The translations under genes and the position numbers were made by a program. Positions 12,674 through 61,335 of a stretch of DNA of 64,000 nucleotides are shown here, piece after piece (within the stretch, counting starts at the first letter, position 1; every line of letters starts with the position of its first letter). This DNA comes from Macrostomum lignano (taxonomy: Eukaryota), in NCBI GenBank assembly GCA_002269645.1, contig NIVC01000419.1, positions 186,001-250,000 of the forward strand, read 5' to 3'. Below the pieces are notes generated by a model, which was given only the letters and a program-made list of their open reading frames with translations, did not search any database and was not told the DNA's origin.

Positions 12674-12786
<113 letters not shown>

Positions 12787-16665: not shown

Positions 16666-16693
16666 CTCTGTTTTCATCGACGCTGTCGCTCAC

Positions 16694-33205: not shown

Positions 33206-33482
33206 CAGACAGACAGACAGACAGACACACAGACACTAAGACAGACACTAAGACAGACACTAAGACAGACACTAGGACAGACACTAAGACAGACACTAAG
33301 ACAGACACTAAGACAGACACTAAGACAGACACTAAGACAGACACTAAGACAGACACTAAGACAGACAGACAGACAGACAGACACTAAGACAGACACTAAG
33401 ACAGACACTAAGACAGACAGACAGACAGACAGACACACAGGCACTAAGACAGACACTAAGACAGACAGACAGACAGACACTA

Positions 33483-33515
<33 letters not shown>

Positions 33516-33842
33516 CACAGGCACTAAGACAGACACTAAGACAGACAGACAGACAGACAGACACACAGACACTAAGACAGACACTAAGACAGACACTAAG
33601 ACAGACAGACAGACACACAGACACTAAGACAGACACTAAGACAGACACTAAGACAGACAGACAGACAGACAGACACACAGACACTAAGACAGACACTAAG
33701 ACAGACAGACAGACAGACAGACACACAGACACTAAGACAGACACTAAGACAGACACTAAGACAGACACTAAGACAGACACTAAGACAGACAGACACACAG
33801 GCACTAAGACAGACACTAAGACAGACAGACAGACAGACACTA

Positions 33843-33879
<37 letters not shown>
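33206..33879 (+). repeat. Compound (ACAG)n microsatellite with ACAGACACTAAG variant units (outer flank of A)
   Basis: Read directly from the sequence. Confidence 0.95.
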
Positions 33880-33884
33880 TACCG

Positions 33885-36800
33885 CTGTCTGTGTGTTTAG
33901 CGGGACCAGAGTTTTGTTAATGCATTAGGTGGACCACCTAGTTTCCTTATAAAACCGGTGTCTTTTGTCTCTACACGAAAAGTTAGCGTGGGTTGTCTTT
34001 CAGTTTAGCCTGCAGATTAGCCATCTCGTGGAAACTGCATGTCACTTTCAACTGGGATAGCTGGACCAGCCCGGACCTGTTTTAGGTGGACCTTCAAAAA
34101 GACACCGTTTAGGTGGACCATCATTTATTTAGCAGAGTACTGGGATTATTATCGACCCAGTACTGTTAAGCACGAGAAACAACACTAAAAGTCCCGTGAC
34201 AGAAGTCCCAAATACACAATATGTAATAAAGTGAAAATAATGCATTCAGTTCTACTTTGCGCCGGACTCAAGAACCGATCATCCCCATTAAAAACAAATG
34301 AATCAAATGCAACTAATTTTTAGGCCGAGAAAAATAGTTACAAGTGCAAATTAACGGCCAAGCAAAAGTTTAAATAGCAAAAAGTCATATTTGTTTTTCA
34401 CTAGAATAATGATAAACCTAAAGAAACACACTTAACGTCCCAAATATGTGCCAAAAGGCAAGTAGATTGACGACGATATAATTAATAAATTACATTTGCC
34501 CAATAAATTTCACGTATTACAATAGAACAACTTTCCACTCAATTTTTGAAAAATGAAAAAAAGTTTTAACGGACGGACAAGACATGTTACGACGGATAGC
34601 GGAATCATCTCACAGAAAGCCACAAGCTGTCGCAGTCAATATCATCATAAACAAACTTTTGCGGTTGAGCACAAAAAAATCGTCTTCATTTTGCCGGAGT
34701 TGCTTGCGTCACTCGTCTGCATCAAAGCTGACTTGCCGTCTCCAGACTGGGCCTGTCAAATTTGGCATTTATACGAGAATTAAGGATTGACAGTTTACAA
34801 CTGATATTCTACTGAGACTTTGAAACAGACTGGCATATTGGTGTCAGTACAGTCTGTAGGTTAGCTGGACCACCTAAACTTGAATTCCACCTCCTATCTG
34901 TGAGGCTCTTCAACAGACTGGCTCAGTTGCGTCAGTGCAGTCTGTAGGTTAGCTGGACCTCCTAAACTTGAATTCCACCTCCTATCTGTGAGGCTCTTAA
35001 ACAGACTGGATCAGTTGCGTCAGTACAGTCTGTAGGTTAGCTGGACCTCCTAAACTTGAATTCCACCCCATCTGTGAAGCTCTAAAACAGACTGGCTCTG
35101 TGACGTCAGTACAGTCTGTAGGTTAGCTGGACCAGTTCAATTAGAATAGGATAAGCCAAATCTGAACACTTTTGCAGCAAGCTTACCACAGTAGATTCAA
35201 TCTCGTCCTATGACTGAACTGCGATGAGGCAACACGTCTGTCCACCGGACTGACCAGCGTCTCAGGTGCCTCAGCCGACTTCTTAGAAGTGTCCAGACGT
35301 GAGGTGTCAGCCTATAGTCGACTTAATGGCTCTTGGCCTTTAAAGTCTTGGTCGATATATTGCTGGAGTTGCTTGCGTCACTCGTCTGCATCAAAGCTGA
35401 CTTGCCGTCTCCAGACTGGGCCTGTCAAATTTGGCATTTATACGAGAATTAAGGATTGACAGTTTACAACTGATATTCTACTGAGACTTTGAAACAGACT
35501 GGCATATTGGTGTCAGTACAGTCTGTAGGTTAGCTGGACCACCTAAACTTGAATTCCACCTCCTATCTGTGAGGCTCTTCAACAGACTGGCTCAGTTGCG
35601 TCAGTGCAGTCTGTAGGTTAGCTGGACCTCCTAAACTTGAATTCCACCCCATCTGTGAAGCTCTAAAACAGACTGGCTCTGTGGCGTCAGTACAGTCTCT
35701 AGGTTAGCTGGACCAGTTCAATTAGAATAGGATAAGCCAAATCTGAACACTTTTGCAGCAAGCTTACCACAGTAGACTCAATCTCGTCCTATGACTGAAC
35801 TGCGATGAGGCAACACGTCTGTCCACCGGACTGACCAGCGTCTCAGGTGCCTCAGCCGACTTCTTAGAAGTGTCCAGACGTGAGGTGTCAGCCTATAGTC
35901 GACTTAATGACTCTTGGTCTTAAAGTCTTGGTCGATATCTTGCTGGAGTTGCTTGCGTCACTCGTCTGCATCAAAGCTGACTTGCCGTCTCCAGACTGGG
36001 CCTGTCAAATTTGGCATTTATACGAGAATTAAGGATTGACAGTTTACAACTGATAATCTACTGAGACTTTGAAACAGACTGGCATATTGGTGTCAGTACA
36101 GTCTGTAGGTTAGCTGGACCACCTAAACTTGAATTCCACCTCCTATCTGTGAGGCTCTTCAACAGACTGGCTCAGTTGCGTCAGTGCAGTCTGTAGGTTA
36201 GCTGGACCACCTAAACTTGAATTCCACCTCCTATCTGTGAGGCTCTTCAACAGACTGGCTCAGTTGCGTCAGTACAGTCTGTAGGTTAGCTGGACCTCCT
36301 AAACTTGAATTCCACCCCATCTGTGAAGCTCTAAAACAGACTGGCTCTGTGGCGTCAGTACAGTTTCTAGGTTAGCTGGACCAGTTCAATTAGAATAGGA
36401 TAAGCCAAATCTGAACACTTTTGCAGCAAGCTTACCACAGTAGATTCAATCTCGTCCTATGACTGAACTGCGATGAGGCAACACGTCTGTCTACCGGACT
36501 GACCAGCGTCTCAGGTGCCTCAGCCGACTTCTTAGAAGTGTCCAGACGTGAGGTGTCAGCCTATAGTCGACTTAATGGCTCTTGGCCTTTAAAGTCTTGG
36601 TCGATATCTTGCTGGAGTTGCTTGCGTCACTCGTCTGCATCAAAGCTGACTTGCCGTCTCCAGACTGGGCCTGTCAAATTTGGCATTTATACGAGAATTA
36701 AGGATTGACAGTTTACAACTGATATTCTACTGAGACTTTGAAACAGACTGGCATAGTGGTGTCAGTACAGTCTGTAGGTTAGCTGGACCTCCTGGACTTG

Positions 36801-39800
36801 AATTCCACCTCCTATCTGTGAGGCTCTTCAACAGACTCGATCAGTTGCGTCAGTGCAGTCTGTAGGTTAGCTGGACCTCCTAAACTTGAATTCCACCTCC
36901 TATCTGTGAGGCTCTTCAACAGACTGGATCAGTTGCGTCAGTGCAGTCTGTAGGTTAGCTGGACCACCTGGACTTGAATTCCACCTCCCATCTGTGAGGC
37001 TCTTCAACAGACTCGATCAGTTGCGTCAGTGCAGTCTGTAGGTTAGCTGGACCTCCTAAACTTGAATTCCACCCCATCTGTGAAGCTCTAAAACAGACTG
37101 GCTCTTTGGCGTCAGTACAGTCTGTAGGTTAGCTGGACCAGTTCAATTAGAATAGGATAAGCCAAATCTGAACACTTTTGCAGCAAGCTTACCACAGTAG
37201 ATTCAATCTCGTCCTATGACTGAACTGCGATGAGGCAACACGTCTGTCTACCGGACTGACCAGCGTCTCAGGTGCCTCAGCCGACTTCTTAGAAGTGTCC
37301 AGACGTGAGGTGTCAGCCTATAGTCGACTTAATGGCTCTTGGTCTTAAAGTCTTGGTCGATATCTTGCTGGAGTTGCTTGCGTCACTCGTCTGCATCAAA
37401 GCTGACTTGCCGTCTCCAGACTGGGCCTGTCAAATTTGGCATTTATACGAGAATTAAGGATTGACAGTTTACAACTGATAATCTACTGAGACTTTGAAAC
37501 AGACTGGCATATTGGTGTCAGTACAGTCTGTAGGTTAGCTGGACCACCTAAACTTGAATTCCACCTCCTATCTGTGAGGCTCTTCAACAGACTGGCTCAG
37601 TTGCGTCAGTGCAGTCTGTAGGTTAGCTGGACCACCTAAACTTGAATTCCACCTCCTATCTGTGAGGCTCTTCAACAGACTGGCTCAGTTGCGTCAGTAC
37701 AGTCTGTAGGTTAGCTGGACCTCCTAAACTTGAATTCCACCCCATCTGTGAAGCTCTAAAACAGACTGGCTCTGTGGCGTCAGTACAGTTTCTAGGTTAG
37801 CTGGACCAGTTCAATTAGAATAGGATAAGCCAAATCTGAACACTTTTGCAGCAAGCTTACCACAGTAGATTCAATCTCGTCCTATGACTGAACTGCGATG
37901 AGGCAACACGTCTGTCTACCGGACTGACCAGCGTCTCAGGTGCCTCAGCCGACTTCTTAGAAGTGTCCAGACGTGAGGTGTCAGCCTATAGTCGACTTAA
38001 TGGCTCTTGGCCTTTAAAGTCTTGGTCGATATCTTGCTGGAGTTGCTTGCGTCACTCGTCTGCATCAAAGCTGACTTGCCGTCTCCAGACTGGGCCTGTC
38101 AAATTTGGCATTTATACGAGAATTAAGGATTGACAGTTTACAACTGATATTCTACTGAGACTTTGAAACAGACTGGCATAGTGGTGTCAGTACAGTCTGT
38201 AGGTTAGCTGGACCTCCTGGACTTGAATTCCACCTCCTATCTGTGAGGCTCTTCAACAGACTGGATCAGTTGCGTCAGTGCAGTCTGTAGGTTAGCTGGA
38301 CCTCCTAAACTTGAATTCCACCTCCTATCTGTGAGGCTCTTCAACAGACTGGATCAGTTGCGTCAGTGCAGTCTGTAGGTTAGCTGGACCACCTGGACTT
38401 GAATTCCACCTCCCATCTGTGAGGCTCTTCAACAGACTCGATCAGTTGCGTCAGTGCAGTCTGTAGGTTAGCTGGACCTCCTAAACTTGAATTCCACCCC
38501 ATCTGTGAAGCTCTAAAACAGACTGGCTCTGTGGCGTCAGTACAGTCTGTAGGTTAGCTGGACCAGTTCAATTAGAATAGGATAAGCCAAATCTGAACAC
38601 TTTTGCAGCAAGCTTACCACAGTAGATTCAATCTCGTCCTATGACTGAACTGCGATGAGGCAACACGTCTGTCTACCGGACTGACCAGCGTCTCAGGTGC
38701 CTCAGCCGACTTCTTAGAAGTGTCCAGACGTGAGGTGTCAGCCTATAGTCGACTTAATGGCTCTTGGTCTTAAAGTCTTGGTCGATATCTTGCTGGAGTT
38801 GCTTGCGTCACTCGTCTGCATCAAAGCTGACTTGCCGTCTCCAGACTGGGCCTGTCAAATTTGGCATTTATACGAGAATTAAGGATTGACAGTTTACAAC
38901 TGATATTCTACTGAGACTTTGAAACAGACTGGCATATTGGTGTCAGTACAGTCTGTAGGTTAGCTGGACCACCTAAACTTGAATTCCACCTCCTATCTGT
39001 GAGGCTCTTCAACAGACTGGCTCAGTTGCGTCAGTGCAGTCTGTAGGTTAGCTGGACCACCTAAACTTGAATTCCACCTCCTATCTGTGAGGCTCTTCAA
39101 CAGACTGGCTCAGTTGCGTCAGTACAGTCTGTAGGTTAGCTGGACCTCCTAAACTTGAATTCCACCCCATCTGTGAAGCTCTAAAACAGACTGGCTCTGT
39201 GGCGTCAGTACAGTTTCTAGGTTAGCTGGACCAGTTCAATTAGAATAGGATAAGCCAAATCTGAACACTTTTGCAGCAAGCTTACCACAGTAGATTCAAT
39301 CTCGTCCTATGACTGAACTGCGATGAGGCAACACGTCTGTCTACCGGACTGACCAGCGTCTCAGGTGCCTCAGCCGACTTCTTAGAAGTGTCCAGACGTG
39401 AGGTGTCAGCCTATAGTCGACTTAATGGCTCTTGGCCTTTAAAGTCTTGGTCGATATCTTGCTGGAGTTGCTTGCGTCACTCGTCTGCATCAAAGCTGAC
39501 TTGCCGTCTCCAGACTGGGCCTGTCAAATTTGGCATTTATACGAGAATTAAGGATTGACAGTTTACAACTGATATTCTACTGAGACTTTGAAACAGACTG
39601 GCATAGTGGTGTCAGTACAGTCTGTAGGTTAGCTGGACCTCCTGGACTTGAATTCCACCTCCTATCTGTGAGGCTCTTCAACAGACTCGATCAGTTGCGT
39701 CAGTGCAGTCTGTAGGTTAGCTGGACCTCCTAAACTTGAATTCCACCTCCTATCTGTGAGGCTCTTCAACAGACTGGATCAGTTGCGTCAGTGCAGTCTG

Positions 39801-42800
39801 TAGGTTAGCTGGACCACCTGGACTTGAATTCCACCTCCCATCTGTGAGGCTCTTCAACAGACTCGATCAGTTGCGTCAGTGCAGTCTGTAGGTTAGCTGG
39901 ACCTCCTAAACTTGAATTCCACCCCATCTGTGAAGCTCTAAAACAGACTGGCTCTTTGGCGTCAGTACAGTCTGTAGGTTAGCTGGACCAGTTCAATTAG
40001 AATAGGATAAGCCAAATCTGAACACTTTTGCAGCAAGCTTACCACAGTAGACTCAATCTCGTCCTATGACTGAACTGCGATGAGGCAACACGTCTGTCTA
40101 CCGGACTGACCAGCGTCTCAGGTGCCTCAGCCGACTTCTTAGAAGTGTCCAGACGTGAGGTGTCAGCCTATAGTCGACTTAATGGCTCTTGGTCTTAAAG
40201 TCTTGGTCGATATCTTGCTGGAGTTGCTTGCGTCACTCGTCTGCATCAAAGCTGACTTGCCGTCTCCAGACTGGGCCTGTCAAATTTGGCATTTATACGA
40301 GAATTAAGGATTGACAGTTTACAACTGATAATCTACTGAGACTTTGAAACAGACTGGCATATTGGTGTCAGTACAGTCTGTAGGTTAGCTGGACCACCTA
40401 AACTTGAATTCCACCTCCTATCTGTGAGGCTCTTCAACAGACTGGCTCAGTTGCGTCAGTGCAGTCTGTAGGTTAGCTGGACCACCTAAACTTGAATTCC
40501 ACCTCCTATCTGTGAGGCTCTTCAACAGACTGGCTCAGTTGCGTCAGTACAGTCTGTAGGTTAGCTGGACCTCCTAAACTTGAATTCCACCCCATCTGTG
40601 AAGCTCTAAAACAGACTGGCTCTGTGGCGTCAGTACAGTTTCTAGGTTAGCTGGACCAGTTCAATTAGAATAGGATAAGCCAAATCTGAACACTTTTGCA
40701 GCAAGCTTACCACAGTAGATTCAATCTCGTCCTATGACTGAACTGCGATGAGGCAACACGTCTGTCTACCGGACTGACCAGCGTCTCAGGTGCCTCAGCC
40801 GACTTCTTAGAAGTGTCCAGACGTGAGGTGTCAGCCTATAGTCGACTTAATGGCTCTTGGTCTTAAAGTCTTGGTCGATATCTTGCTGGAGTTGCTTGCG
40901 TCACTCGTCTGCATCAAAGCTGACTTGCCGTCTCCAGACTGGGCCTGTCAAATTTGGCATTTATACGAGAATTAAGGATTGACAGTTTACAACTGATATT
41001 CTACTGAGACTTTGAAACAGACTGGCATAGTGGTGTCAGTACAGTCTGTAGGTTAGCTGGACCTCCTGGACTTGAATTCCACCTCCTATCTGTGAGGCTC
41101 TTCAACAGACTCGATCAGTTGCGTCAGTGCAGTCTGTAGGTTAGCTGGACCTCCTAAACTTGAATTCCACCTCCTATCTGTGAGGCTCTTCAACAGACTG
41201 GATCAGTTGCGTCAGTGCAGTCTGTAGGTTAGCTGGACCACCTGGACTTGAATTCCACCTCCCATCTGTGAGGCTCTTCAACAGACTCGATCAGTTGCGT
41301 CAGTGCAGTCTGTAGGTTAGCTGGACCTCCTAAACTTGAATTCCACCCCATCTGTGAAGCTCTAAAACAGACTGGCTCTGTGGCGTCAGTACAGTCTGTA
41401 GGTTAGCTGGACCAGTTCAATTAGAATAGGATAAGCCAAATCTGAACACTTTTGCAGCAAGCTTACCACAGTAGATTCAATCTCGTCCTATGACTGAACT
41501 GCGATGAGGCAACACGTCTGTCTACCGGACTGACCAGCGTCTCAGGTGCCTCAGCCGACTTCTTAGAAGTGTCCAGACGTGAGGTGTCAGCCTATAGTCG
41601 ACTTAATGGCTCTTGGTCTTAAAGTCTTGGTCGATATCTTGCTGGAGTTGCTTGCGTCACTCGTCTGCATCAAAGCTGACTTGCCGTCTCCAGACTGGGC
41701 CTGTCAAATTTGGCATTTATACGAGAATTAAGGATTGACAGTTTACAACTGATATTCTACTGAGACTTTGAAACAGACTGGCATATTGGTGTCAGTACAG
41801 TCTGTAGGTTAGCTGGACCACCTAAACTTGAATTCCACCTCCTATCTGTGAGGCTCTTCAACAGACTGGCTCAGTTGCGTCAGTGCAGTCTGTAGGTTAG
41901 CTGGACCACCTAAACTTGAATTCCACCTCCTATCTGTGAGGCTCTTCAACAGACTGGCTCAGTTGCGTCAGTACAGTCTGTAGGTTAGCTGGACCTCCTA
42001 AACTTGAATTCCACCCCATCTGTGAAGCTCTAAAACAGACTGGCTCTGTGGCGTCAGTACAGTTTCTAGGTTAGCTGGACCAGTTCAATTAGAATAGGAT
42101 AAGCCAAATCTGAACACTTTTGCAGCAAGCTTACCACAGTAGATTCAATCTCGTCCTATGACTGAACTGCGATGAGGCAACACGTCTGTCCACCGGACTG
42201 ACCAGCGTCTCAGGTGCCTCAGCCGACTTCTTAGAAGTGTCCAGACGTGAGGTGTCAGCCTATAGTCGACTTAATGGCTCTTGGCCTTTAAAGTCTTGGT
42301 CGATATCTTGCTGGAGTTGCTTGCGTCACTCGTCTGCATCAAAGCTGACTTGCCGTCTCCAGACTGGGCCTGTCAAATTTGGCATTTATACGAGAATTAA
42401 GGATTGACAGTTTACAACTGATATTCTACTGAGACTTTGAAACAGACTGGCATATTGGTGTCAGTACAGTCTGTAGGTTAGCTGGACCACCTAAACTTGA
42501 ATTCCACCTCCTATCTGTGAGGCTCTTCAACAGACTCGATCAGTTGCGTCAGTGCAGTCTGTAGGTTAGCTGGACCTCCTAAACTTGAATTCCACCTCCT
42601 ATCTGTGAGGCTCTTAAACAGACTGGCTCAGTTGCGTCAGTGCAGTCTGTAGGTTAGCTGGACCTCCTAAACTTGAATTCCACCTCCTATCTGTGAGGCT
42701 CTTCAACAGACTGGCTCAGTTGCGTCAGTGCAGTCTGTAGGTTAGCTGGACCTCCTAAACTTGAATTCCACCCCATCTGTGAAGCTCTAAAACAGACTGG

Positions 42801-45800
42801 CTCTGTGGCGTCAGTACAGTCTGTAGGTTAGCTGGACCAGTTCAATTAGAATAGGATAAGCCAAATCTGAACACTTTTGCAGCAAGCTTACCACAGTAGA
42901 TTCAATCTCGTCCTATGACTGAACTGCGATGAGGCAACACGTCTGTCCACCGGACTGACCAGCGTCTCAGGTGCCTCAGCCGACTTCTTAGAAGTGTCCA
43001 GACGTGAGGTGTCAGCCTATAGTCGACTTAATGGCTCTTGGCCTTTAAAGTCTTGGTCGATATCTTGCTGGAGTTGCTTGCGTCACTCGTCTGCATCAAA
43101 GCTGACTTGCCGTCTCCAGACTGGGCCTGTCAAATTTGGCATTTATACGAGAATTAAGGATTGACAGTTTACAACTGATATTCTACTGAGACTTTGAAAC
43201 AGACTGGCATAGTGGTGTCAGTACAGTCTGTAGGTTAGCTGGACCTCCTGGACTTGAATTCCACCTCCTATCTGTGAGGCTCTTCAACAGACTCGATCAG
43301 TTGCGTCAGTGCAGTCTGTAGGTTAGCTGGACCTCCTAAACTTGAATTCCACCTCCTATCTGTGAGGCTCTTCAACAGACTGGATCAGTTGCGTCAGTGC
43401 AGTCTGTAGGTTAGCTGGACCACCTGGACTTGAATTCCACCTCCCATCTGTGAGGCTCTTCAACAGACTCGATCAGTTGCGTCAGTGCAGTCTGTAGGTT
43501 AGCTGGACCTCCTAAACTTGAATTCCACCCCATCTGTGAAGCTCTAAAACAGACTGGCTCTGTGGCGTCAGTACAGTCTGTAGGTTAGCTGGACCAGTTC
43601 AATTAGAATAGGATAAGCCAAATCTGAACACTTTTGCAGCAAGCTTACCACAGTAGATTCAATCTCGTCCTATGACTGAACTGCGATGAGGCAACACGTC
43701 TGTCTACCGGACTGACCAGCGTCTCAGGTGCCTCAGCCGACTTCTTAGAAGTGTCCAGACGTGAGGTGTCAGCCTATAGTCGACTTAATGGCTCTTGGTC
43801 TTAAAGTCTTGGTCGATATCTTGCTGGAGTTGCTTGCGTCACTCGTCTGCATCAAAGCTGACTTGCCGTCTCCAGACTGGGCCTGTCAAATTTGGCATTT
43901 ATACGAGAATTAAGGATTGACAGTTTACAACTGATATTCTACTGAGACTTTGAAACAGACTGGCATATTGGTGTCAGTACAGTCTGTAGGTTAGCTGGAC
44001 CACCTAAACTTGAATTCCACCTCCTATCTGTGAGGCTCTTCAACAGACTGGCTCAGTTGCGTCAGTGCAGTCTGTAGGTTAGCTGGACCACCTAAACTTG
44101 AATTCCACCTCCTATCTGTGAGGCTCTTCAACAGACTGGCTCAGTTGCGTCAGTACAGTCTGTAGGTTAGCTGGACCTCCTAAACTTGAATTCCACCCCA
44201 TCTGTGAAGCTCTAAAACAGACTGGCTCTGTGGCGTCAGTACAGTTTCTAGGTTAGCTGGACCAGTTCAATTAGAATAGGATAAGCCAAATCTGAACACT
44301 TTTGCAGCAAGCTTACCACAGTAGATTCAATCTCGTCCTATGACTGAACTGCGATGAGGCAACACGTCTGTCCACCGGACTGACCAGCGTCTCAGGTGCC
44401 TCAGCCGACTTCTTAGAAGTGTCCAGACGTGAGGTGTCAGCCTATAGTCGACTTAATGGCTCTTGGCCTTTAAAGTCTTGGTCGATATCTTGCTGGAGTT
44501 GCTTGCGTCACTCGTCTGCATCAAAGCTGACTTGCCGTCTCCAGACTGGGCCTGTCAAATTTGGCATTTATACGAGAATTAAGGATTGACAGTTTACAAC
44601 TGATATTCTACTGAGACTTTGAAACAGACTGGCATATTGGTGTCAGTACAGTCTGTAGGTTAGCTGGACCACCTAAACTTGAATTCCACCTCCTATCTGT
44701 GAGGCTCTTCAACAGACTCGATCAGTTGCGTCAGTGCAGTCTGTAGGTTAGCTGGACCTCCTAAACTTGAATTCCACCTCCTATCTGTGAGGCTCTTCAA
44801 CAGACTGGCTCAGTTGCGTCAGTGCAGTCTGTAGGTTAGCTGGACCACCTAAACTTGAATTCCACCTCCTATCTGTGAGGCTCTTCAACAGACTGGCTCA
44901 GTTGCGTCAGTACAGTCTGTAGGTTAGCTGGACCTCCTAAACTTGAATTCCACCCCATCTGTGAAGCTCTAAAACAGACTGGCTCTGTGGCGTCAGTACA
45001 GTTTCTAGGTTAGCTGGACCAGTTCAATTAGAATAGGATAAGCCAAATCTGAACACTTTTGCAGCAAGCTTACCACAGTAGATTCAATCTCGTCCTATGA
45101 CTGAACTGCGATGAGGCAACACGTCTGTCTACCGGACTGACCAGCGTCTCAGGTGCCTCAGCCGACTTCTTAGAAGTGTCCAGACGTGAGGTGTCAGCCT
45201 ATAGTCGACTTAATGGCTCTTGGCCTTTAAAGTCTTGGTCGATATCTTGCTGGAGTTGCTTGCGTCACTCGTCTGCATCAAAGCTGACTTGCCGTCTCCA
45301 GACTGGGCCTGTCAAATTTGGCATTTATACGAGAATTAAGGATTGACAGTTTACAACTGATATTCTACTGAGACTTTGAAACAGACTGGCATATTGGTGT
45401 CAGTACAGTCTGTAGGTTAGCTGGACCACCTAAACTTGAATTCCACCTCCTATCTGTGAGGCTCTTCAACAGACTCGATCAGTTGCGTCAGTGCAGTCTG
45501 TAGGTTAGCTGGACCTCCTAAACTTGAATTCCACCTCCTATCTGTAAGGCTCTTAAACAGACTGGCTCAGTTGCGTCAGTGCAGTCTGTAGGTTAGCTGG
45601 ACCTCCTAAACTTGAATTCCACCTCCTATCTGTGAGGCTCTTCAACAGACTGGCTCAGTTGCGTCAGTGCAGTCTGTAGGTTAGCTGGACCTCCTAAACT
45701 TGAATTCCACCCCATCTGTGAAGCTCTAAAACAGACTGGCTCTGTGGCGTCAGTACAGTCTGTAGGTTAGCTGGACCAGTTCAATTAGAATAGGATAAGC

Positions 45801-48649
45801 CAAATCTGAACACTTTTGCAGCAAGCTTACCACAGTAGATTCAATCTCGTCCTATGACTGAACTGCGATGAGGCAACACGTCTGTCCACCGGACTGACCA
45901 GCGTCTCAGGTGCCTCAGCCGACTTCTTAGAAGTGTCCAGACGTGAGGTGTCAGCCTATAGTCGACTTAATGGCTCTTGGCCTTTAAAGTCTTGGTCGAT
46001 ATCTTGCTGGAGTTGCTTGCGTCACTCGTCTGCATCAAAGCTGACTTGCCGTCTCCAGACTGGGCCTGTCAAATTTGGCATTTATACGAGAATTAAGGAT
46101 TGACAGTTTACAACTGATATTCTACTGAGACTTTGAAACAGACTGGCATATTGGTGTCAGTACAGTCTGTAGGTTAGCTGGACCACCTAAACTTGAATTC
46201 CACCTCCTATCTGTGAGGCTCTTCAACAGACTCGATCAGTTGCGTCAGTGCAGTCTGTAGGTTAGCTGGACCTCCTAAACTTGAATTCCACCTCCTATCT
46301 GTAAGGCTCTTAAACAGACTGGCTCAGTTGCGTCAGTGCAGTCTGTAGGTTAGCTGGACCTCCTAAACTTGAATTCCACCTCCTATCTGTGAGGCTCTTC
46401 AACAGACTGGCTCAGTTGCGTCAGTGCAGTCTGTAGGTTAGCTGGACCTCCTAAACTTGAATTCCACCCCATCTGTGAAGCTCTAAAACAGACTGGCTCT
46501 GTGGCGTCAGTACAGTCTGTAGGTTAGCTGGACCAGTTCAATTAGAATAGGATAAGCCAAATCTGAACACTTTTGCAGCAAGCTTACCACAGTAGATTCA
46601 ATCTCGTCCTATGACTGAACTGCGATGAGGCAACACGTCTGTCCACCGGACTGACCAGCGTCTCAGGTGCCTCAGCCGACTTCTTAGAAGTGTCCAGACG
46701 TGAGGTGTCAGCCTATAGTCGACTTAATGGCTCTTGGCCTTTAAAGTCTTGGTCGATATCTTGCTGGAGTTGCTTGCGTCACTCGTCTGCATCAAAGCTG
46801 ACTTGCCGTCTCCAGACTGGGCCTGTCAAATTTGGCATTTATACGAGAATTAAGGATTGACAGTTTACAACTGATATTCTACTGAGACTTTGAAACAGAC
46901 TGGCATATTGGTGTCAGTACAGTCTGTAGGTTAGCTGGACCACCTAAACTTGAATTCCACCTCCTATCTGTGAGGCTCTTCAACAGACTGGATCAGTTGC
47001 GTCAGTGCAGTCTGTAGGTTAGCTGGACCTCCTAAACTTGAATTCCACCTCCCATCTGTAAGGCTCTTAAACAGACTGGCTCAGTTGCGTCAGTGCAGTC
47101 TGTAGGTTAGCTGGACCAGCTTAAGTTGTATGTGCACCGATTTGCTTACCTGCTAGATTTTGCTTTCTGGTCTGGCAGGAAAACTTATTTCTGAAATTTC
47201 GATTGAGTAGGTTCTTACTGAGGCTCTTTACTAAAGTTAATCATTTTTTCATCCTAAAAAACACTTCGTTTTGGTACTTACTGCAATTTCAATGCAATTT
47301 TTCAAGAACGTCGTCGAAAACATTTTTCACTGGCTCCCAAGTATTGTTAGATCTAAAAGTCGTGTGTTGTTTTATTAGCTACGTAGTAATCCAAAGGCTT
47401 GGTTTTACTAGAGAATTAGAACGCGAGGAAGTCAATCTTTTAAATTGAATCTTTTCATTTTATGCTTACCTTAGGTATCCAGTCCACTTGATGTAACATC
47501 TGTTACTGTTGCACCTCTCCGGGACTCTGTGTTATTGGGATATCTCCTGCGAGACATTCGTGTCTTCTCGTGTATTGACTATTGACAGTTCAGTTGAATG
47601 TTTCAGTCTATCCGAGAAATTAGGTGGTCCATGTAAGCCTGTTTTAGCTAGACCAAAGGTTTTCACTTTTATAGCTCTGCCCCTCTCTGACTCGTTTAGT
47701 CGACGGACTGTCTGTCCCTTGGACTGCTCCTATTGGCTGGCATTCCCAGTAGGGGTGGTCCGATTTTTACCACCTCTCCGAAATCAGTCCTTAACCAATG
47801 CAGCTCTAGTCTGTGTGACTGTGTTGTGCGCTTCGAGTTTCGTTTACATGGACCTCAACAGACGATTTGATGTGCGTGCAACTGTGTTTAGTGGGACCCA
47901 GGTTAAACTAAAATAAAAAATATCAGACCTTCGCTTTGAGCTTGGTTTGGTGCTTCCCCACCCCTAAACAGGGCTCTGAGAGCAGAACCTTCTTCTCAAG
48001 GCCGAAACTCTCCACCAGGATTATTTCTTATTGTGGTTCGACACTTTTATAAATATCAAATATCAAAAGGAATCTAAAAGAAGGAAAGTCGATAGGCCTA
48101 TAGGATACAATATCCATTTAAACTACTATCAGCAGCTAACGTGATAAAGGAACCGTCATTCGAATATTTTTCGGGCACAAAACCTTGGGAAGGCTTTGAA
48201 GAAAGCTCAACAAAGCCGTGTGTGCCTAATTTAAGATCACGGAAATTAAATATATTACTTTTTTGGCGTAAAAGATGTTGTAAAAAGGTTAATTGCCAAC
48301 AGACTGAAACAGACTGAAACAGACTGAAACAGACTGCAACAGACAAATTCAGAAATTTTCATTGACAATTTTTGTTTAGCTGGACCTTTCAGACCCGGTT
48401 TAGGTGGACATCGCAAAAAGTCCATGTAAACTGAAATGCATTTTTTTCTGAACATGAATGCCGATGAATGTTGCGCTTTGCGGCACTCATTCCTGACATC
48501 CATTGCTCTGTTTTGTGGTCCTTATAAACCACTCAACGTTGTCTGGAGCAAAAATATTCGGTGGTCCACCTACGCTGTCCACCTAAACCGAAAGGTCCAG
48601 CTAATGCGGCAACTGAACCGACGAAAGGTCCAAGTAAACACACAGACAG
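33885..48649 (+). mobile_element. Copy A of an unclassified non-autonomous TIR element (14.8 kb, satellite-expanded)
   Basis: Left end CTGTCTGTGTGTTTAGCGGGACC and right end GGTCCAAGTAAACACACAGACAG match at 20/23. A second matched block GCATTAG(G/C)TGGACC lies further in. Full-length homology to the inverted copy B. No transposase ORF. Confidence 0.7.
34696..47117 (+). repeat. Hierarchical satellite: 17 full and 1 partial units of 580/669/756 bp, each with 3-5 copies of an 88-bp subunit motif
   Basis: Unit starts (GGAGTTGCTTGCGTC) at 34696, 35365, 35945, 36614, 37370, 38039, 38795, 39464, 40220, 40888, 41644, 42313, 43070, 43826, 44495, 45252, 46009, 46766. Confidence 0.95.
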
Positions 48650-48651
48650 TA

Positions 48652-48775
48652 ACACACACAGGCACTAAGACAGACACTAAGACAGACACTAAGACAGACA
48701 CTAAGACAGACACTAAGACAGACAGACAGACAGACAGACACACAGACACTAAGACAGACACTAAGACAGACACTA

Positions 48776-48824
<49 letters not shown>

Positions 48825-48847
48825 CACAGACACTAAGACAGACACTA

Positions 48848-48908
<61 letters not shown>

Positions 48909-48921
48909 GGCAGACAGACAG
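48652..48921 (+). repeat. Compound (ACAG)n / ACAGACACTAAG microsatellite (inner flank of A)
   Basis: Read directly. Same orientation and same variant units as the outer flank. Confidence 0.95.
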
Positions 48922-49366
48922 TGAGATTTTTCATTCGCTTACTTGACTTCAGGCGAGTGCCTGCTTAAAGCACACTGTTTCGTCAATATTTAATCATTTG
49001 CAGCCGGGTTTTAGCCTGCACGAGCGCACCTTTCCTTTTTGTCAGATTATTTCGTGTTTTGCTGCAGCGGCTGTCTTCTGGGAGCAGGTTGTCCAAAGAA
49101 AGGAAAAACGGCCAATTTTCCGTCTTTTTGCCTTTGAAATTTTCTCAGCATTTTTTCAGCAGGATTTCTTCGAAATCATTTAGCAGATTTGGACTGCTTT
49201 CCCAGCTGCGCTCCCGTCTTGAGCAGCGGTGGTTAAAAACCTACGGATTGAAATTAGCCGGGTATATTGCACTCACTATACAGGCCGTGCAAGGCAAAAC
49301 ATGCATCCAATTTATCCTCCTGTGAGGAAAAGATAACCACAAACTATATAGCTAACCTCGAATGTT

Positions 49367-51060
49367 GATTGAATTCCCCAAATATTCTTATTGAATTACC
49401 CAAAGATTCTTATCGAATTCCCCAACGATTCTTATTCAATTCCCCAAAGATTTTTATTGAATTACCCAAAGATTCTTATTGAATTCCCTAACGATTCTTA
49501 TTCAATTCCCCAAAGATTTTTATTGAATTCCCCAAAGATTTTTATTGAATTCCCCAACGATTCTTATTCAATTCCCCAAAGATTTTTATTGAATTACCCA
49601 ATGATTCTTATTGAATTCCCCAAAGATTCTTATTGAATTCCCCAACGATTCTTATTCAATTCCCCAAATATTCTTATTGAATTCCCCAAAGATTCGTATT
49701 GAATTCCCCAAATATTCTTATTGAATTACCCAAAGATTCTTATTGAATTCCCCAACGATTCTTATTGAATTCCCCAAAGATTCGTATTGAATTCCCCAAA
49801 GATTCGTATTGAATTCCCCAAATATTCTTATTGAATTACCCAAAGATTCGTATTGAATTCCCCAACGATTCTTATTCAATTCCCCAAAGATTCTTATTGA
49901 ATTCCCCAACGATTCTTATTGAACTCCCCAATAATTTTTATTGAATTCCTCAAGGGTTCTTATTGAATTCCCAAAAGATTCTTATTGAATTCCCCAAGAA
50001 TTCTTATTGAATTCCCAAAAGATTCTTATTGAATTCCCCAAGAATTCTTATTGAATTCCCAAAAGATTCTTATTGAATTCTCCAATAATTCTTATTGAAT
50101 TCCCCAAAGATTCGTATTCAATTCCCAAAGATTTTTATTGAATTCCCCAACGATTCTTATTCAATTCCTCAAAGATTTTTATTGAATTCCCCAACGACTC
50201 TTATTGAATTCCCCAAAGATTTTTATTGAACACCCCAACGATTCTTATTCAATTCCACAAAGATTTTTATTGAATTCCCCAACGATTCTTATTCAATTCC
50301 CCAAAGATTTTTATTGAATTACCCAAAGATTCTTATTGAATCCCCCAACGATTCTTATTGAATTCCCCAACGATTCTTATTCAATTCCCCAAAGATTCTT
50401 ATTGAATTCCCCAACGATTCTTATTGAATTCCCCAAAGATTCTTATTGAATTACCCAATAATTTTTATTGAATTCCTCAAGGGTTCTTATTGAATTCCCC
50501 AAAGATTCTTATTGAATTCCCCAATAATTTTTATTGAATTCCTCAAGGGTTCTTATTGAATTCCCAAAAGATTCTTATTGAATTCCCCAAGAATTCTTAT
50601 TGAATTCCCCAAGAATTCTTATTGAATTCCCCAAGAATTCTTATTGAATTCCCCAAGAATTCTTATTGAATTCCCAAAAGATTCTTATTGAATTCTCCAA
50701 TAATTCTTATTGAATTCCCCAAAGATTCGTATTCAATTCCCAAAGATTTTTATTGAATTCCCCAACGATTCTTATTCAATTCCTCAAAGATTTTTATTGA
50801 ATTCCCCAACGACTCTTATTGAATTCCCCAAAGATTTTTATTGAACACCCCAACGATTCTTATTCAATTCCCCAAAGATTTTTATTGAATTCCCCAACGA
50901 TTCTTATTCAATTCCACAAAGATTTTTATTGAATTCCCCAACGATTCTTATTCAATTCCACAAAGATTTTTATTGAATTCCCCAACGATTCTTATTCAAT
51001 TCCCCAAAGATTTTTATTGAATTCTCCAAAGATTCCTATTAAATTCTTCAAAGATTCTCA
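49367..51060. repeat. 22-bp minisatellite ATTGAATTCCCCAAAGATTCTT, ~77 copies, in the spacer between copies A and B
   Basis: Period 22. A ~615-bp block duplication is marked by variants near 50109 and 50724. Confidence 0.95.
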
Positions 51061-51616
51061 CAAAAATTCTAACGATTAATGATGATTTTTTAGATTTTTA
51101 TTTAAATTTTAGACTCCTAAAAACTCCCGCTTCTAAACAGATCCCCAGAAACCTCTGAGCACGACAGCTTCGCTGGAACCACCTGGATGTGGAACCAGCA
51201 TCAGGAGCTCAATTAAAAATAATGACGCCACTGACAGCTGCACCTCATCCACAATCACCACTTTGAAGAAGCATCCCACCAATCAGCCACCCCTCCCTCA
51301 TAATGATGCAAGGCTCCTCACGGGCAGTCTGTATCGATGACTTTCAACCGCTGTACCAAGATTTTAGAGCCTACACGGAATACTGATCTAGCAGCTCTGG
51401 GTACGAGCAGAACTTTTACACGAATAGTTCAACGCGATAACGCAATAGACACTCTGGTCCGGTAAAAGTCGTGGGTTTAATTCCTTGTGTGCAATCACAT
51501 GGGAGGATTTTTGGTTTTTATTGCGGTTCACGTCCCCCCCCGCCCCAGAGTGTCCAGACGTCTGATGATCTGATGATAAAATCAGATACACAAATACACA
51601 GGATCACTGTATCTCA

Positions 51617-51986
<370 letters not shown>

Positions 51987-51992
51987 GTGTTA

Positions 51993-54900
51993 CTGTCTGT
52001 GTGTTTACTTGGACCTTTCGTCGGTTCAGTTGCCGCATTAGCTGGACCTTTCGGTTTAGGTGGACAGCGTAGGTGGACCACCGAATATTTTTGCTCCAGA
52101 CAACGTTGAGTGGTTTATAAGGACCACAAAACAGAGCAATGGATGTCAGGAATGAGTGCCGCAAAGCGCAACATTAAACGGCATTCATGTTCAGAAAAAA
52201 ATGCATTTCAGTTTACATGGACTTTTTGCGATGTCCACCTAAACCGGGTCTGAAAGGTCCAGCTAAACAAAAATTGTCAATGAAAATTTCTGAATTTGTC
52301 TGTTGCAGTCTGTTTCAGTCTGTTTCAGTCTGTTTCAGTCTGTTGGCAATTAACCTTTTTACAACATCTTTTACGCCAAAAAAGTAATCTATTTAATTTC
52401 CGTGATCTTAAATTAGGCACACACGGCTTTGTTGAGCTTTCTTCAAAGCCTTCCCACGGTTTTGTGGCCGAAAAATATTCGAATGACGGTTCCTTTATCA
52501 CGTTAGCTGCTGATAGTAGTTTAAATGGATATTGTATCCTATAGGCCTATCGACTTTCCTTCTTTTAGATTCCTTTTGATATTTGATATTTATAAAAGTG
52601 TCGAACCACAATAAGAAATAATCCTGGTGGAGAGTTTCGGCCTTTAGAAGAAGGTTCTGCTCTCAGATCCCTGTTTAGGGGCGGGGAAGCACCAAACCAA
52701 GCTCAAAGCGAAGGTCTGATATTTTTCATTTTAGTTTAGCCTGGGTCCCACTAAACACAGTTGCACGCACATCAAATCGTCTGTTGAGGTCCATGTAAAC
52801 GAAACTCGAAGCGCACAACACAGTCACACAGACTAGAGCTGCATTGGTTAAGGACTGATTTCGGAGAGGTTGGTAAAAATCGGACCACCCCTACTGGGAA
52901 TGCCAGCCAATAGGAGCAGTCCAAGGGACAGACAGTCCGTCGACGAAACGAGCCGGAGGGGCAGAGCTATAAAAGTGAAAACCCTTGGTCTAGCTAAAAC
53001 AGGCTTACATGGACCACCTAATTTCTCGGATAGACTGAAACATTCAACTGAACTGTCAATAGTCAATACACGAGAAGACACGAATGTCTCGCAGGAGATA
53101 TCCCAATAACACAGAGTCCCGGAGAGGTGCAACAGTAACAGATGTTACATCAAGTGGACTGGATACCTAAGGTAAGCATAAAATTAAAATATTAAATTTA
53201 AAAGATCGACTTCCTCGCGTTCTAATTCTCTAGTAAAACCAAGCCTTTGGATTACTACGTAGCTAATAAAACAACACACGACTTTTAGATCTAACAATAC
53301 TTGGGAGCCAGTGAAAAATGTTTTCGACGACGTTCTTGAAAAATTGCATTGAAATTGCAGTAAGTACCAAAACGAAGTGTTATTTAGGATGAAAAAAATG
53401 ATTAACTTTAGTAAAGAGCTTCAATAAGAACCTACTCAATCGAAATTTCAGAAATATGTTTTCCTGCCAGACCAAAAAGCAAAATCTAGCAGGTAAGCAA
53501 ATCGGTGCACATACAACTTAAGCTGGTCCAGCTAACCTACAGACTGTACTGACACAACTGAGCCAGTCTGTTTAAGAGCCTTACAGATGGGAGGTGGAAT
53601 TCAAGTTTAGGAGGTCAAGCTAACCTACAGACTGCACTGACGCAACAGAGCCAGTCTGTTTAAGAGCCTCACAGATAGGAGGTGGAATTCAAGTTTAGGT
53701 GGTCCAGCTAGCCCTCAGACTGCACTGACGCAACTGAGCCAGTCTGTTTAAGAGCCTCACAAATGGGAGGTGAAATTCAAGTTTAGGTGGTCCAGCTAAC
53801 CTACAGACTGTACTGACGCAACTGATCTAGTCTGTTTAAGAGCCTCACAGATGGGGTGGAATTCAAGTTTAGGAGGTCCAGCTAACCTACAGACTGCACT
53901 GACGCAACTGATCCAGTCTGTTGAAGAGCCTCACAGATGGGAGGTGGAATTCAAGTCCAGGTGGTCCAGCTAACCTACAGACTGCACTGACGCAACTGAG
54001 CCAGTCTGTTTTAGAGCCTCACAGATGGGGTGGAATTCAAGTTTAGGTGGTCCAGCTAGCCCTCAGACTGCACTGACGCAACTGAGCCAGTCTGTTTAAG
54101 AGCCTCACAAATGGGAGGTGGAATTCAAGTTTAGGAGGTCCAGCTAACCTACAGACTGCACTGACGCAACTGAGCCAGTCTGTTTAAGAGCCTCACAAAT
54201 GGGAGGTGGAATTCAAGTTTAGGTGGTCCAGCTAACCTACAGACTGCACTGACGCAACTGATCCAGTCTGTTTTAGAGCCTCACCAATAGGAGGTGGAAT
54301 TCAAGTTTAGGAGGTCCAGCTAACCTACAGACTGCACTGACGCAACTGAGCCAGTCTGTTGAAGAGCCTCACAGATAGGAGGTGGAATTCAAGTTTAGGT
54401 GGTCCAGCTAACCTACAGACTGTACTGACACCAATATGCCAGTCTGTTTCAAAGTCTCAGTAGATTATCAGTTGTAAACTGTCAATCCTTAATTCTCGTA
54501 TAAATGCCAAATTTGACAGGCCCAGTCTGGAGACGGCAAGTCAGCTTTGATGCAGACGAGTGACGCAAGCAACTCCGGCAAGATATCGACCAAGACTTTA
54601 AGACCAAGAGCCATTAAGTCGACTATAGGCTGACACCTCACGTCTGGACACTTCTAAGAAGTCGGCTGAGGCACCTGAGACGCTGGTCAGTCCGGTGGAC
54701 AGACGTGTTGCCTCATCGCAGTTCAGTCATCGGACGAGATTGAATCTACTGTGGTGAGCTTGCTGCAAAAGTGTTCAGATTTGGCTTATCCTATTCTAAT
54801 TGAACTGGTCCAGCTAACCTACAGACTGTACTGACGCCACAGAGCCAGTCTGTTTTAGAGCCTCACAGATGGGGTGGAATTCAAGTTTAGGTGGTCCAGC

Positions 54901-55962
54901 TAACCTACAGACTGTACTGACGCAACTGATCTAGTCTGTTTAAGAGCCTCACAGATGGGGTGGAATTCAAGTTTAGGAGGTCCAGCTAACCTACAGACTG
55001 CACTGACACCACTATGCCAGTCTGTTTCAAAGTCTCAGTAGAATATCAGTTGTAAACTGTCAATCCTTAATTCTCGTATAAATGCCAAATTTGACAGGCC
55101 CAGTCTGGAGACGGCAAGTCAGCTTTGATGCAGACGAGTGACGCAAGCAACTCCGGCAAAATGAAGACGATTTTTTTGTGCTCAACCGCAAAAGTTTGTT
55201 TATGATGATATTGACTGCGACAGCTTGTGGCTTTCTGTGAGATGATTCCGCTATCCGTCGTAACATGTCTTGTCCGTCCGTTAAAACTTTTTTCATTTTT
55301 CAAAAATTGAGTGGAAAGTTGTTCTATTGTAATACGTGAAATTTATTAGGCAAATGTATTTATTAATTATATCGTCGTGAATCCACTTGCCTTTTGGCAC
55401 ATTTTTGGGACGTTAAGTGTGTTTCTTTAGGTTTATCATTATTCTAGTGAAAAACAAATATGACTTTTTGCTATTTAAACTTTTGCTTGGCCGTTAATTT
55501 GCACTTGTAACAATTTTTCTCGGCCTAAAAATTAGTTGCATTTGATTCATTTGTTTTTAATGGGGATGATGGTTCTTGAGTCCGGCGCAAAGTAGAACTG
55601 AATGCATTATTTTCACTTTATTACATATTGTGTATTTGGGACTTCTGTCACGGGACTTTTAGTGTTGTTTCGCGTGCTTAACAGTACTGGGTCGATAATA
55701 ATCCCAGTACTCTGCTAAATAAATGATGGTCCACCTAAACGGTGTCTTTTTGAAAGTCCACCTAAAACAGGTCCGGGCTGGTCCATCTATCCCAGTTGAA
55801 AGTGACATGCAGTTTCCACGAGATGGCTAATCTGCAGGCTAAACTGAAAGACAACCCACGCTAACTTTTCGTGTAGAGACAAAAGACACCGGTTTTATAG
55901 CGAAACTAGGTGGTCCACCTAATGCATTAACCAAACTCTGGTCCCGCTAAACACACAGACAG
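51993..55962 (-). mobile_element. Copy B of the same element (4.0 kb), inverted relative to copy A
   Basis: 51993-53520 is the reverse complement of 47118-48649, and 55155-55962 of 33885-34695, with scattered substitutions. Same termini. Confidence 0.75.
53524..55154 (-). repeat. Copy-B internal repeat: about 11 tandem 88-bp subunits plus one full large unit
   Basis: GGTCCAGCTAACCTACAGACTG recurs about every 86-88 bp from 53524 to 54400, then one constant region and 3 more subunits. Confidence 0.9.
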
Positions 55963-55967
55963 CGGTA

Positions 55968-57426
<1,459 letters not shown>

Positions 57427-58509
57427 AATAAAAAATGGTGCAATAACACAATCGGTTAGAAGTTAAAAAAGGCTACACGCAAAGAAACTAGATAAGTTGG
57501 GCCATAGTCAAGCCAACACGCAGATTCATGATAAAGAGACGGTTCTACACTATCCATATACTAAAAAATTTTACTCTAAATTTTGAAGCAGCTTATGAGA
57601 TTCATTTTAAGCTATAAGAATTGCATTTCAAATCGGTTCAAGCGGATATTCTATTCGAACAAATCATCTTTCTGAATATCCCAGTCTTTCCTCGGTTACC
57701 CTTGCTTTGTGCCGAGGTTGAAGCCGCGCATCAAGCCGATTTTATGAACCAATCACGGCACGGCTAGGTAGGTGACGTCACTCGGCTTCTAGGCACACCG
57801 GTCAAGGACAGTTCAAGGCCATTTTGTTCACAAATCACGCTCGTGATGCATGATTCTGGGCTGCATTTAAACGAGCCGATGTTTCCGTATTTTTCCATCC
57901 TTGTCGGGGTTCGTGCTGGAGCATAATCTCCTTGCCAGTACCGTAGTTCCGACATCTCCCCCCTTAAGAATTCCCGTTTTTATATTTGACACATGATCGT
58001 CTCTGATCTCCTTGGTGAATTCGAACAGTTCCGTGACCCGCCTGCTGTATAAGGTATTGCATTGCAGTATTGCTATTAACACAGCACTTAAGATTTTGCT
58101 CAGTTAGAAGTGATACATGTCAAAAGATAAACATTTTTCTCCGTATTGCATTTTTTCGGTAAGCCTGCATCCTTAAATTTTTCAAGAAACGTACTTGAGC
58201 AGTCCTTGGTTCCTTAACTGCCGGATCTTCTCATTATTAAAAGTACATGCATTTTTTGTCACATTTGCTTCTATAATTATTTACTCATTCTCAGCTTTAA
58301 ACTGCGGTAGTTTTATGCTGTATGCTGCAGATCTGGAAGAGTAGCTGAGCTACGAATAGCCCATTTGGATGAGGAAAGTTAGTTGCCAGCTTGCAGGAAG
58401 TCCTAGCGATTCCGTGTTCTAGAAGAAATTCATCCATTTGTGCAAGAGTCTCTCAATTGGTATATTGTGGTATATTGGTGTTTCTTTAGATCCAACTGTC
58501 TCTTAGTGG

Positions 58510-60563: not shown

Positions 60564-60656
60564 CTGCAGTGCAGTTAGTTACAAATTGATAGTGGGGACA
60601 GAGACAAGAGTTCTACGTGACAAAATTCCGACATTATTTTGGGAATCGGCGTTGTT

Positions 60657-61185: not shown

Positions 61186-61335
61186 TGCAGCGCTACATAT
61201 TGGCGAATCGGTTCGATTATCCTACTTTAAGCAGTCTGATTAGTATAACATTTACAAAGCTAAATTGAAATAGAAACTGAAATTTGTGAATTATTATTCA
61301 TTAAAAAGTTTCGAGGTTTCGAATCGTATGCTCAC

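Follow-up and report, generated by a model that had tools for sequence, protein, structure and literature searches.

The DNA elements documented to target microsatellites insert in (TA)n, as is the case for Micron in rice, a DNA element with this palindromic target. Waldo and similar microsatellite-specific non-long terminal repeat (non-LTR) retrotransposons insert in a fixed orientation in (ACAY)n, and the HUH transposons of the IS200/IS605 type (e.g. IS608) have asymmetric ends, a hairpin at the end, no target duplication, and an insertion site beside a specific tetranucleotide, entered in one orientation. The non-coding element described here, termed X, is present twice, in inverted orientation, in a 64,000-nucleotide window of Macrostomum lignano DNA (contig NIVC01000419.1 of assembly GCA_002269645.1, positions 186,001 to 250,000, forward strand), with both copies embedded in (ACAG)n arrays. 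It appears to be a satellite-carrying non-autonomous DNA element that uses this non-palindromic tetranucleotide microsatellite as its target.

Two groups of described elements are particularly relevant to such a structure. MuTAnT, a Mutator-like element of Medicago, targets (TA)n and generates Mutator-type duplications (PMC4486113). The Helentron-associated non-autonomous elements (HINEs), comprising DINE-1, pearl, Cg_HINE and DTC84 (PMC4067079, PMC7492417, PMC3879986), have subterminal inverted repeats (subTIRs) of 12-15 bp, with the 5' one 2-4 nt from the terminus, and the 3' one preceding a short palindrome that is situated 38-60 bp from the 3' terminus (PMC7492417, PMC4067079). HINEs insert at TT in T-rich DNA without target duplication, and their internal (GTCY)n microsatellite separates the 5' module from the tandem repeats (PMC7492417, PMC4067079).

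Probable insertion of element X in pre-existing arrays

It is likely that X is a discrete mobile element that has undergone two independent insertions. The fuller reading, which is favoured here only tentatively, is of a non-autonomous DNA transposon with an expandable internal satellite, inserted twice independently in pre-existing, probably paralogous, (ACAG)n arrays, on each occasion between ...ACAG and AC.... Copy A (X_A, plus strand) and copy B (X_B, minus strand) lie tail to tail, with 2.7 kb between them (Table 1). Between the copies, the unique arms of the left side agree at 98.8% (929 matches and 11 mismatches), and those of the right side at 98.5% (1500 matches and 23 mismatches), the arms being 0.8 and 1.5 kb long. 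All four (ACAG)n arrays of the window adjoin the ends of X, in one polarity relative to the element, as the initial annotation had described. Within these arrays the repeats form variant units, such as (ACAG)n-ACACACAG[G/A]CACTAAG-(ACAGACACTAAG)m in array A, and ACTG-(ACAG)~25-ACAA-(ACAG)~7-ACTG-(ACAG)3-ACAC..ACAC-(ACAG)4-AC-(ACAG)n in array B. This higher-order variant pattern is common to the left and right flanks of one copy, where it runs on in register from one side of the element to the other, but is different between A and B.

The empty sites were reconstructed by the exact removal of X (ACATACCG to CAGACAGTAAC) and joining of the flanks, followed by a search for the resulting 32-nt probe in the arrays of the same copy. 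The junction of copy A, ACAGACAGACAG/ACACACAGGCACTAAG (probe ACAGACAGACAG/ACACACAGGCACTAAGACAG), has two other exact occurrences, both in the left part of its array, and that of copy B, ACAGACAGACAG/ACTGACAGACAGACAG (probe ACAGACAGACAG/ACTGACAGACAGACAGACAC), has one in the left and one in the right part; probes keeping any 1-6 nt of X on either side had no match in the arrays. Aligned over 140-144 columns, the reconstructed sites agree with uninterrupted paralogous units at 128/144, 129/140, 136/142 and 136/142 positions, with diagnostic variants flanking the reconstructed junction on both sides. As joining the flanks restores a unit that is uninterrupted elsewhere in the array, the element is, at each locus, younger than the arrays with their higher-order patterns. 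Directly to the right of TAAC(AC), the sequence is wholly different between the copies (ACACAGGCACTAAG in A, TGACAGACAGACAG in B), and finding the same boundaries in two different contexts means that X is a discrete inserted unit.

The target-site duplication amounts to 0-2 bp, with AC on both sides of both copies, and the boundaries of X_A are exact only to a 2-nt rotation because this AC is ambiguous. The CA duplication that the initial annotation could fit to copy A but not B is therefore superseded, as AC fits both after a one-base shift of the boundary. The description of a discrete non-coding mobile element associated with (ACAG)n is retained and, of the two forms that this association was given, the array analysis favours "microsatellite-targeting" over "microsatellite-carrying". 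The arrays constitute 6.1% of the non-element window, such that two random insertions there would have p ~0.004, and a genuine preference of X for (ACAG)n is, on balance, probable. The phase of insertion, ACAG^AC, is common to both copies, each of which is located where a pure ACAG run stops on its 3' side; positions of this kind account for 44% of ACAG sites in array A and for 6.3% in array B, corresponding to a joint p of ~0.03. The shared polarity is uninformative, since two copies give a 50% chance expectation (p = 0.5).

Structure of the element ends

The ends of X carry a perfect 15-bp inverted repeat, CTGTCTGTGTGTTTA, which extends to 20/23 positions through GGACC. The left end of X_A, CTGTCTGTGTGTTTAGCGGGACC (33885-33907), and the reverse complement of its right end, CTGTCTGTGTGTTTACTTGGACC (48627-48649), thus match at 20 of 23 positions with the outer 15 perfect, which accords with the imperfect 23-bp terminal inverted repeat (TIR) originally noted in both copies. 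In copy A, the two repeats are positioned at 33885 and 48635. Copy B, which has the same ends as X_A when read on the reverse strand, carries them at 51993 and 55948. Since the empty-site boundaries leave 8 nt (left) and 4 nt (right) outside them, these inverted repeats are subterminal; the outer nucleotides do not match each other. TACCG and TAACA are identical in X_A and X_B and lie inside the inserted unit, and hence are no flank; the initial annotation had listed TACCG and TGTTA as the five bases outside the TIR.

The expectation that the left junction can fold was borne out, with ACAGACAG-ACATACCG-CTGTCTGT predicted to form a stem of 8+3 bp (-14.7 kcal/mol, z = -2.7 to -3.0). The right end has no predicted fold (z = +0.8 to +1.0), which confines the hairpin to a single end. 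The terminal repeat also recurs inside X (ACTGTGTTTAGTGGGACC), and this internal copy may be the relic of a nested or shorter element. The longest open reading frame (ORF) confined to X is 135 aa and has no Pfam match, with stops throughout the six frames, and searches of the element with Rfam, tRNA models and Pfam returned no match.

Reiterated motif and internal satellite

A second block is present at both ends (GCATTAGGTGGACC, 40 nt inward on the left; GCATTAGCTGGACC, 43 nt inward on the right), as in the bipartite TIR initially annotated, but it is not a special partner of the terminal repeat. Rather, it is one instance of a reiterated 13-bp motif, (G)TTTAG[G/C]TGGACC, a variant of which also forms the final part of the terminal repeat. 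The sequence TTAGSTGGACC has 99 exact occurrences in the window, against 0.05 expected, all of which fall within 33925-55922. Several of the motif sites are near-palindromic (TTAGGTGGACCACCTA), with a 17-bp form TTAGGTGGACCACCTAA, a pattern that would suit a DNA-binding protein acting as a dimer. The GTTTAGGTGGACC sites would be bound by a protein provided in trans.

The difference in size between the copies (14,777 bp and 3,982 bp) is a consequence of the copy number of an 88-bp satellite. That of X_A has 79 88-mer cores, organised in 1425-bp higher-order units (668+757) that are 98.1-99.9% identical, and that of X_B has two blocks, one containing 10.6 copies of the 88-mer, with 12 cores detected. 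Each 88-mer has one near-palindromic TTAGCTGGACC(A/T)CCTAA site and a hairpin with an 8-bp stem, and the repeats have the same orientation relative to the element ends in X_A and X_B. An origin of the 88-mer as a relic of joined ends, or circle junction, was rejected, with the binding-site module alone being common to both.

Table 1. Positions of element X, its component features, and the adjoining arrays, in window coordinates
Feature	Position	Strand	Description
Element X, copy A (X_A)	33877-48653	+	14,777 bp, ACATACCG to CAGACAGTAAC
Element X, copy B (X_B)	51989-55970	-	3,982 bp; boundaries as in copy A; two satellite blocks
Left subterminal inverted repeat, X_A	33885-33907	+	perfect 15 bp at 33885-33899, then GCG, then GGACC
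Right subterminal inverted repeat, X_A	48635-48649, extended to 48627	+	within right-arm motif cluster
Terminal TAAC, X_A	48650-48653	+	four nt beyond the right inverted repeat
Left-junction hairpin (predicted), ACAGACAG-ACATACCG-CTGTCTGT	33865-33892	+	5' arm formed by ACAG units of host or element
Left-arm motif cluster	33897-34119	+	12, 40 (palindromic), 172, 197 and 224 nt from left inverted repeat, all inward
Right-arm motif cluster	48376-48649	+	inward at 10, 43, 61 and 74 nt from end of right inverted repeat; opposite direction at 237 and 261
Internal satellite, X_A	34688-47117	+	18 blocks: spacer of ~358 bp, then 2.6, 3.6 or 4.5 copies of 88-bp repeat
Internal copy of terminal repeat, ACTGTGTTTAGTGGGACC	47881-47898 (copy A), 52744-52761 (copy B)	+ (copy A); direct relative to left repeat	~770 bp from right end
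Internal short repeat, (AACAGACTGA)4.7	48298-48344	+	10-bp unit, contains ACAG/ACTG units
Host array A, left part	33206-33876	+	variants ACACTAAG 12-mers and ACACACAGGCACTAAG; (ACAG)8 adjoining element
Host array A, right part	48654-48921	+	opens with complete variant unit ACACACAGGCACTAAG; closes with CAG then TGAGAT
Host array B, right part	51617-51988	-	B-type variants: ACTG, ACAA, AC insertion, ACACTAAGACAC
Host array B, left part	55971-57426	-	1,456 bp; ACAA(ACAG)9 adjoining element
Spacer between loci	48922-51616	.	unique; begins TGAGAT, ends ATCTCA; 22-bp minisatellite at 49368-51058

Searches for related sequences

Protein, metagenome, viral and prokaryotic genome collections were searched, none of which contains the source genome. 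The 72-aa ORF at the right end of X had no match in the protein search, and a DNA scan with the 88-mer core had none in the metagenome or viral collections. The terminal-repeat pattern, which did not match the genome or viral collections, was found in five metagenome contigs (L001-L005) that represent one locus of one eukaryote in five samples. At this locus (1320-1575 of L001, and also in L002-L005), a core of ~125 bp starting GTGTTTAGTTGGACC is bordered by inverted microsatellite-like arms, the left being (CTGT/CTCT)n, with a length that differs among samples, and the right (ACAG/ACAT/AGAG)n. Nothing but the microsatellite is shared with the window, and the architecture is different; the locus was set aside as a chance match or, at most, a very distant relative. 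A paired-motif pattern gave 3 viral and 5 prokaryotic matches, compared with ~2 expected by chance.

Comparison with described elements

X resembles HINEs in being non-coding, in its asymmetric ends, and in its perfect 15-bp subTIRs, one of which is 4 nt (TAAC/GTTA) from the boundary and the other 8 nt, with the predicted hairpin beside this other repeat. It likewise has central tandem repeats of fixed orientation and variable number (79 and 12 cores), and a link with a tetranucleotide repeat of the GTCT/ACAG type. The target duplication, none or a dinucleotide in HINEs, is 0-2 bp in X, where the assignment of AC is ambiguous for X_A and X_B alike. On the minus strand, the components of X follow the HINE order of GTTA, subTIR, the GTCT-containing (TCAGTCTGTT)4.7, a variable segment, tandem repeats, subTIR and hairpin. 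Compared with the 3' palindrome of HINEs, the predicted hairpin is at a distance of 8 nt + 4k, with a distal arm of ACAG/CTGT units that belong to either host or element. X differs from HINEs in its target, between ACAG and AC in (ACAG)n rather than TT in T-rich DNA, in its much longer arms, in both of which the 13-bp motif is reiterated, and in the long ACAG arrays being outside the element and older than it; no partner encoding Rep/helicase was identified in the collections searched. The sole internal candidate, (AACAGACTGA)4.7, is in the expected relative position, and may be the counterpart of the internal microsatellite of HINEs. Hence X is likened to HINEs but not classified as one, because two of their defining features, the TT target and the internal microsatellite, fail. 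An "outward HINE", in which the left repeat, hairpin and array would be a 5' module extending away from X, was rejected, there being no 3' repeat beyond either array, and the outer flanks being unrelated. Ends of a canonical Helitron at the outer edges of the arrays were likewise rejected, by inspection.

Canonical Helitrons begin with TC at the 5' end, terminate in CTRR at the 3' end with a hairpin ~11 nt upstream, and insert between A and T, whereas X has the ends ACATACCG and GTAAC (GTTAC and CGGTATGT on the other strand), and a target of G^A / T^C. The cut-and-paste superfamilies have characteristic duplications, of 8 bp for hAT, 9 bp for Mutator, 7-8 bp for P, TWA for PIF, TTAA for piggyBac and TA for Tc1/mariner. 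None of these is found at X, as the empty site allows at most 2 bp (AC), and any extra nucleotides, including TA, abolish the match. The inverted repeats of X also stop short of its termini, with 8 nt and 4 nt outside them, unlike general cut-and-paste TIRs, with which X nevertheless shares inward reiterated subterminal motifs at both ends. Hence X matches no standard superfamily signature in the tests made, in line with the first impression that its termini fitted no superfamily that could be named.

X is like Micron and MuTAnT in being flanked on both sides by one pre-existing microsatellite, at two copies, with the simple repeat as a safe target. However, the (TA)n of these elements is palindromic, leaving polarity undefined, whereas X has a non-palindromic tetranucleotide target and a duplication of no more than 2 bp. 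The likeness to IS200/IS605-type transposons is by analogy, and consists of the asymmetric ends, the hairpin at an end, the lack of duplication, and the oriented insertion adjacent to a tetranucleotide; yet these are small, prokaryotic, and lack inverted repeats and internal satellites, and no HUH gene is linked to X. Waldo elements share the fixed-orientation insertion in AC-rich tetranucleotide repeats, but are retroelements with a reverse transcriptase and 5' truncation, whereas X is non-coding, carries inverted repeats, and lacks a poly-A or 3' tail.

Origin of the two copies and mechanism of transposition

Several observations weigh against the interpretation of X as a Helentron-like transposon inserted twice independently in (ACAG)n. 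There are just two copies, 2.7 kb apart, and no further copy or autonomous partner was present in the collections searched, which do not include the source genome. The inner edges of both arrays have the same 6 bp after CAG (TGAGAT at 48922-48927, ATCTCA at 51611-51616), a sign that the arrays, at least, stem from an older inverted duplication. The placement of both insertions at a 3' edge is not explained by the model. Helentrons insert at TT in T-rich DNA and have (GTCY)n inside, whereas X has (ACAG)n as its target, with the arrays external to it. The 3' hairpin would require ACAG units of uncertain ownership, whether host or element. Reiterated subterminal protein-binding motifs are also typical of DDE cut-and-paste elements, not Helitron-like ones.

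A rival reading is of a single insertion, followed by a local inverted segmental duplication that copied the element, the arrays and the 6 bp beyond, after which the arrays diverged through slippage and unequal exchange. The tail-to-tail inverted arrangement of such close copies fits this history, as do the shared TGAGAT, the confinement of the window's (ACAG)n arrays to these loci, and left-proximal flanks that in both copies read (ACAG)4-variant-(ACAG)8/9. The same 6 bp, and the lack of any other ACAG array in the window, do suggest that arrays A and B are old inverted paralogues. Yet a duplication that included the element does not fit, because the right flanks differ completely after TAAC(AC), and because each array holds uninterrupted paralogues of the junction-spanning unit, which predate the insertion unless X was precisely excised from duplicated units. 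The uninterrupted units cannot be derived from the interrupted one by unequal exchange or conversion, meaning precise excision would be needed, and mobility itself would thereby be implied. Beyond the repeat unit, homology is limited to TGAGAT on one side: the outer flanks of the two loci have nothing in common, and the spacer has no similarity to the rest of the window. Hence a single insertion is improbable, and the array analysis speaks against the simple form of the local inverted segmental duplication that the initial annotation had named as the alternative. Gene conversion, through homology-driven copying of X between the arrays, was rejected, as neither copy has the proximal right flank of the other.

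How X would have moved, as a twice-inserted element, is less certain. The mechanism favoured here, although in itself less likely than not, is a Helentron-like one, in which X would be mobilised by the single-strand reaction of an HUH nuclease, either rolling-circle or "peel and paste". The mobile unit, taken on the minus strand, would be ordered 5'-GTTA-subTIR ... (TCAGTCTGTT)n ... tandem repeats ... subTIR-CGGTATGT-(CTGT)k-3'. Cuts after GT would occur at the junction between host and 5' end, at the target and, for any k, at the 3' end of the element, which is compatible with a single HUH nuclease specificity. The integration machinery would select (ACAG)n, with the (CTGT)n arrays supplying many target sites in one strand orientation. 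The asymmetric termini, duplication of at most 2 bp, hairpin at one end, central tandem repeats and GTCT/ACAG link all point towards HINEs, rather than a classical DDE element. Nevertheless, X may be a non-autonomous DDE cut-and-paste transposon that generates a 2-bp AC duplication, the transposase of which would bind GTTTAGGTGGACC in both arms and prefer (ACAG)n; this is somewhat unlikely. It would account for the inward motif clusters in both arms, the terminal repeat ending in a motif variant, the AC on both sides of both copies, and a reinsertion 2.7 kb away, local reinsertion being typical of cut-and-paste elements. Duplications of 2 bp have been reported for CMC-Mirage and ISL2EU. However, DDE tips normally match, whereas the outermost nucleotides of X do not (the left end has ATACCG, and the right end, reverse-complemented, GTTA(C)); the empty sites rule out duplications of TA, TTAA, TWA or 8-9 bp; and no transposase was found.

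Alternatively, a circular form could integrate, either by a Campbell-type homologous crossover between ACAG units borne by the element and an (ACAG)n array of the genome, or through a site-specific recombinase of the tyrosine or serine type, with a short AC core as its site. Either route would of itself place directly repeated (ACAG)n at both ends and fix the polarity. In favour of a circle are the lack of duplication beyond the 2-nt shared core, and the asymmetric ends. The right repeat ends in ACAGACAG, and the left junctions are richer in ACAG units than their paralogous units (8 vs 2, 5 and 7 in A; 9 vs 6 and 7 in B), which also counts in its favour. Set against this, TAAC is without a following ACAG unit in both copies, which is improbable for randomly placed homologous crossovers; neither a recombinase gene nor a circular junction was observed; and inverted repeats and arrays of binding sites are unexpected for Crypton-like elements. 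Hence circle integration is quite unlikely. Similarly little probability is attached to X representing an undescribed lineage of eukaryotic DNA transposons, site- and strand-specific for (ACAG)n, which would choose its target through base-pairing of the terminal CTGTCTGT/ACAGACAG with the microsatellite, in a guide-like, single-strand manner comparable to the target recognition of IS200/IS605, and would seed its satellite from its own binding-site modules.

Significance of the element

Genome-wide confirmation would make X a DNA transposon with specificity for a microsatellite of non-palindromic tetranucleotide units. A non-palindromic target makes orientation specificity, and hence strand-specific target recognition, testable. 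The two copies also show how amplification of an internal 88-bp repeat with putative binding sites took one element from 4 kb to 15 kb, and are thereby a clear case of satellite DNA originating within a transposon. Furthermore, X may help explain the regular association of microsatellites of the GTCT/ACAG type with DINE-1/pearl-type elements.

Genomic surroundings

Minisatellites are very dense in the regions 1-32600 and 58400-61200 of the window, with >20 arrays of 11-43-bp units, or roughly one per 3 kb. Examples lie at 780-1761, 4553-5686, 9754-11494 and 26626-30284, the last containing 156 copies of a 23-mer; the motif of X does not occur in the arrays of these two regions. On the minus strand, 16613-20523 contains exons of a TOG/HEAT-repeat gene with a 401-aa ORF, the Pfam matches of which are weak and below cut-offs, except for a CEP104-like TOG domain at the cut-off. 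Minisatellites separate its exons (18326-18978), and an array of 15-bp units (19512-19953) lies in frame inside an ORF. Situated 2 kb upstream of X_A, an ATG-initiated 414-aa ORF on the plus strand (30627-31871) encodes a hydrophobic, membrane-receptor-like product with no Pfam match, the exact sequence of which is absent from the protein collection. On the other side of the element copies, a 701-aa ORF on the minus strand (61332-63437) encodes an adenylate kinase domain and a long glutamate-rich stretch, and is most similar (46% identity) to a sequence from Lottia gigantea, a mollusc. A further microsatellite, a perfect (GA)54.5 with 100% matches, is located at 12677-12785.

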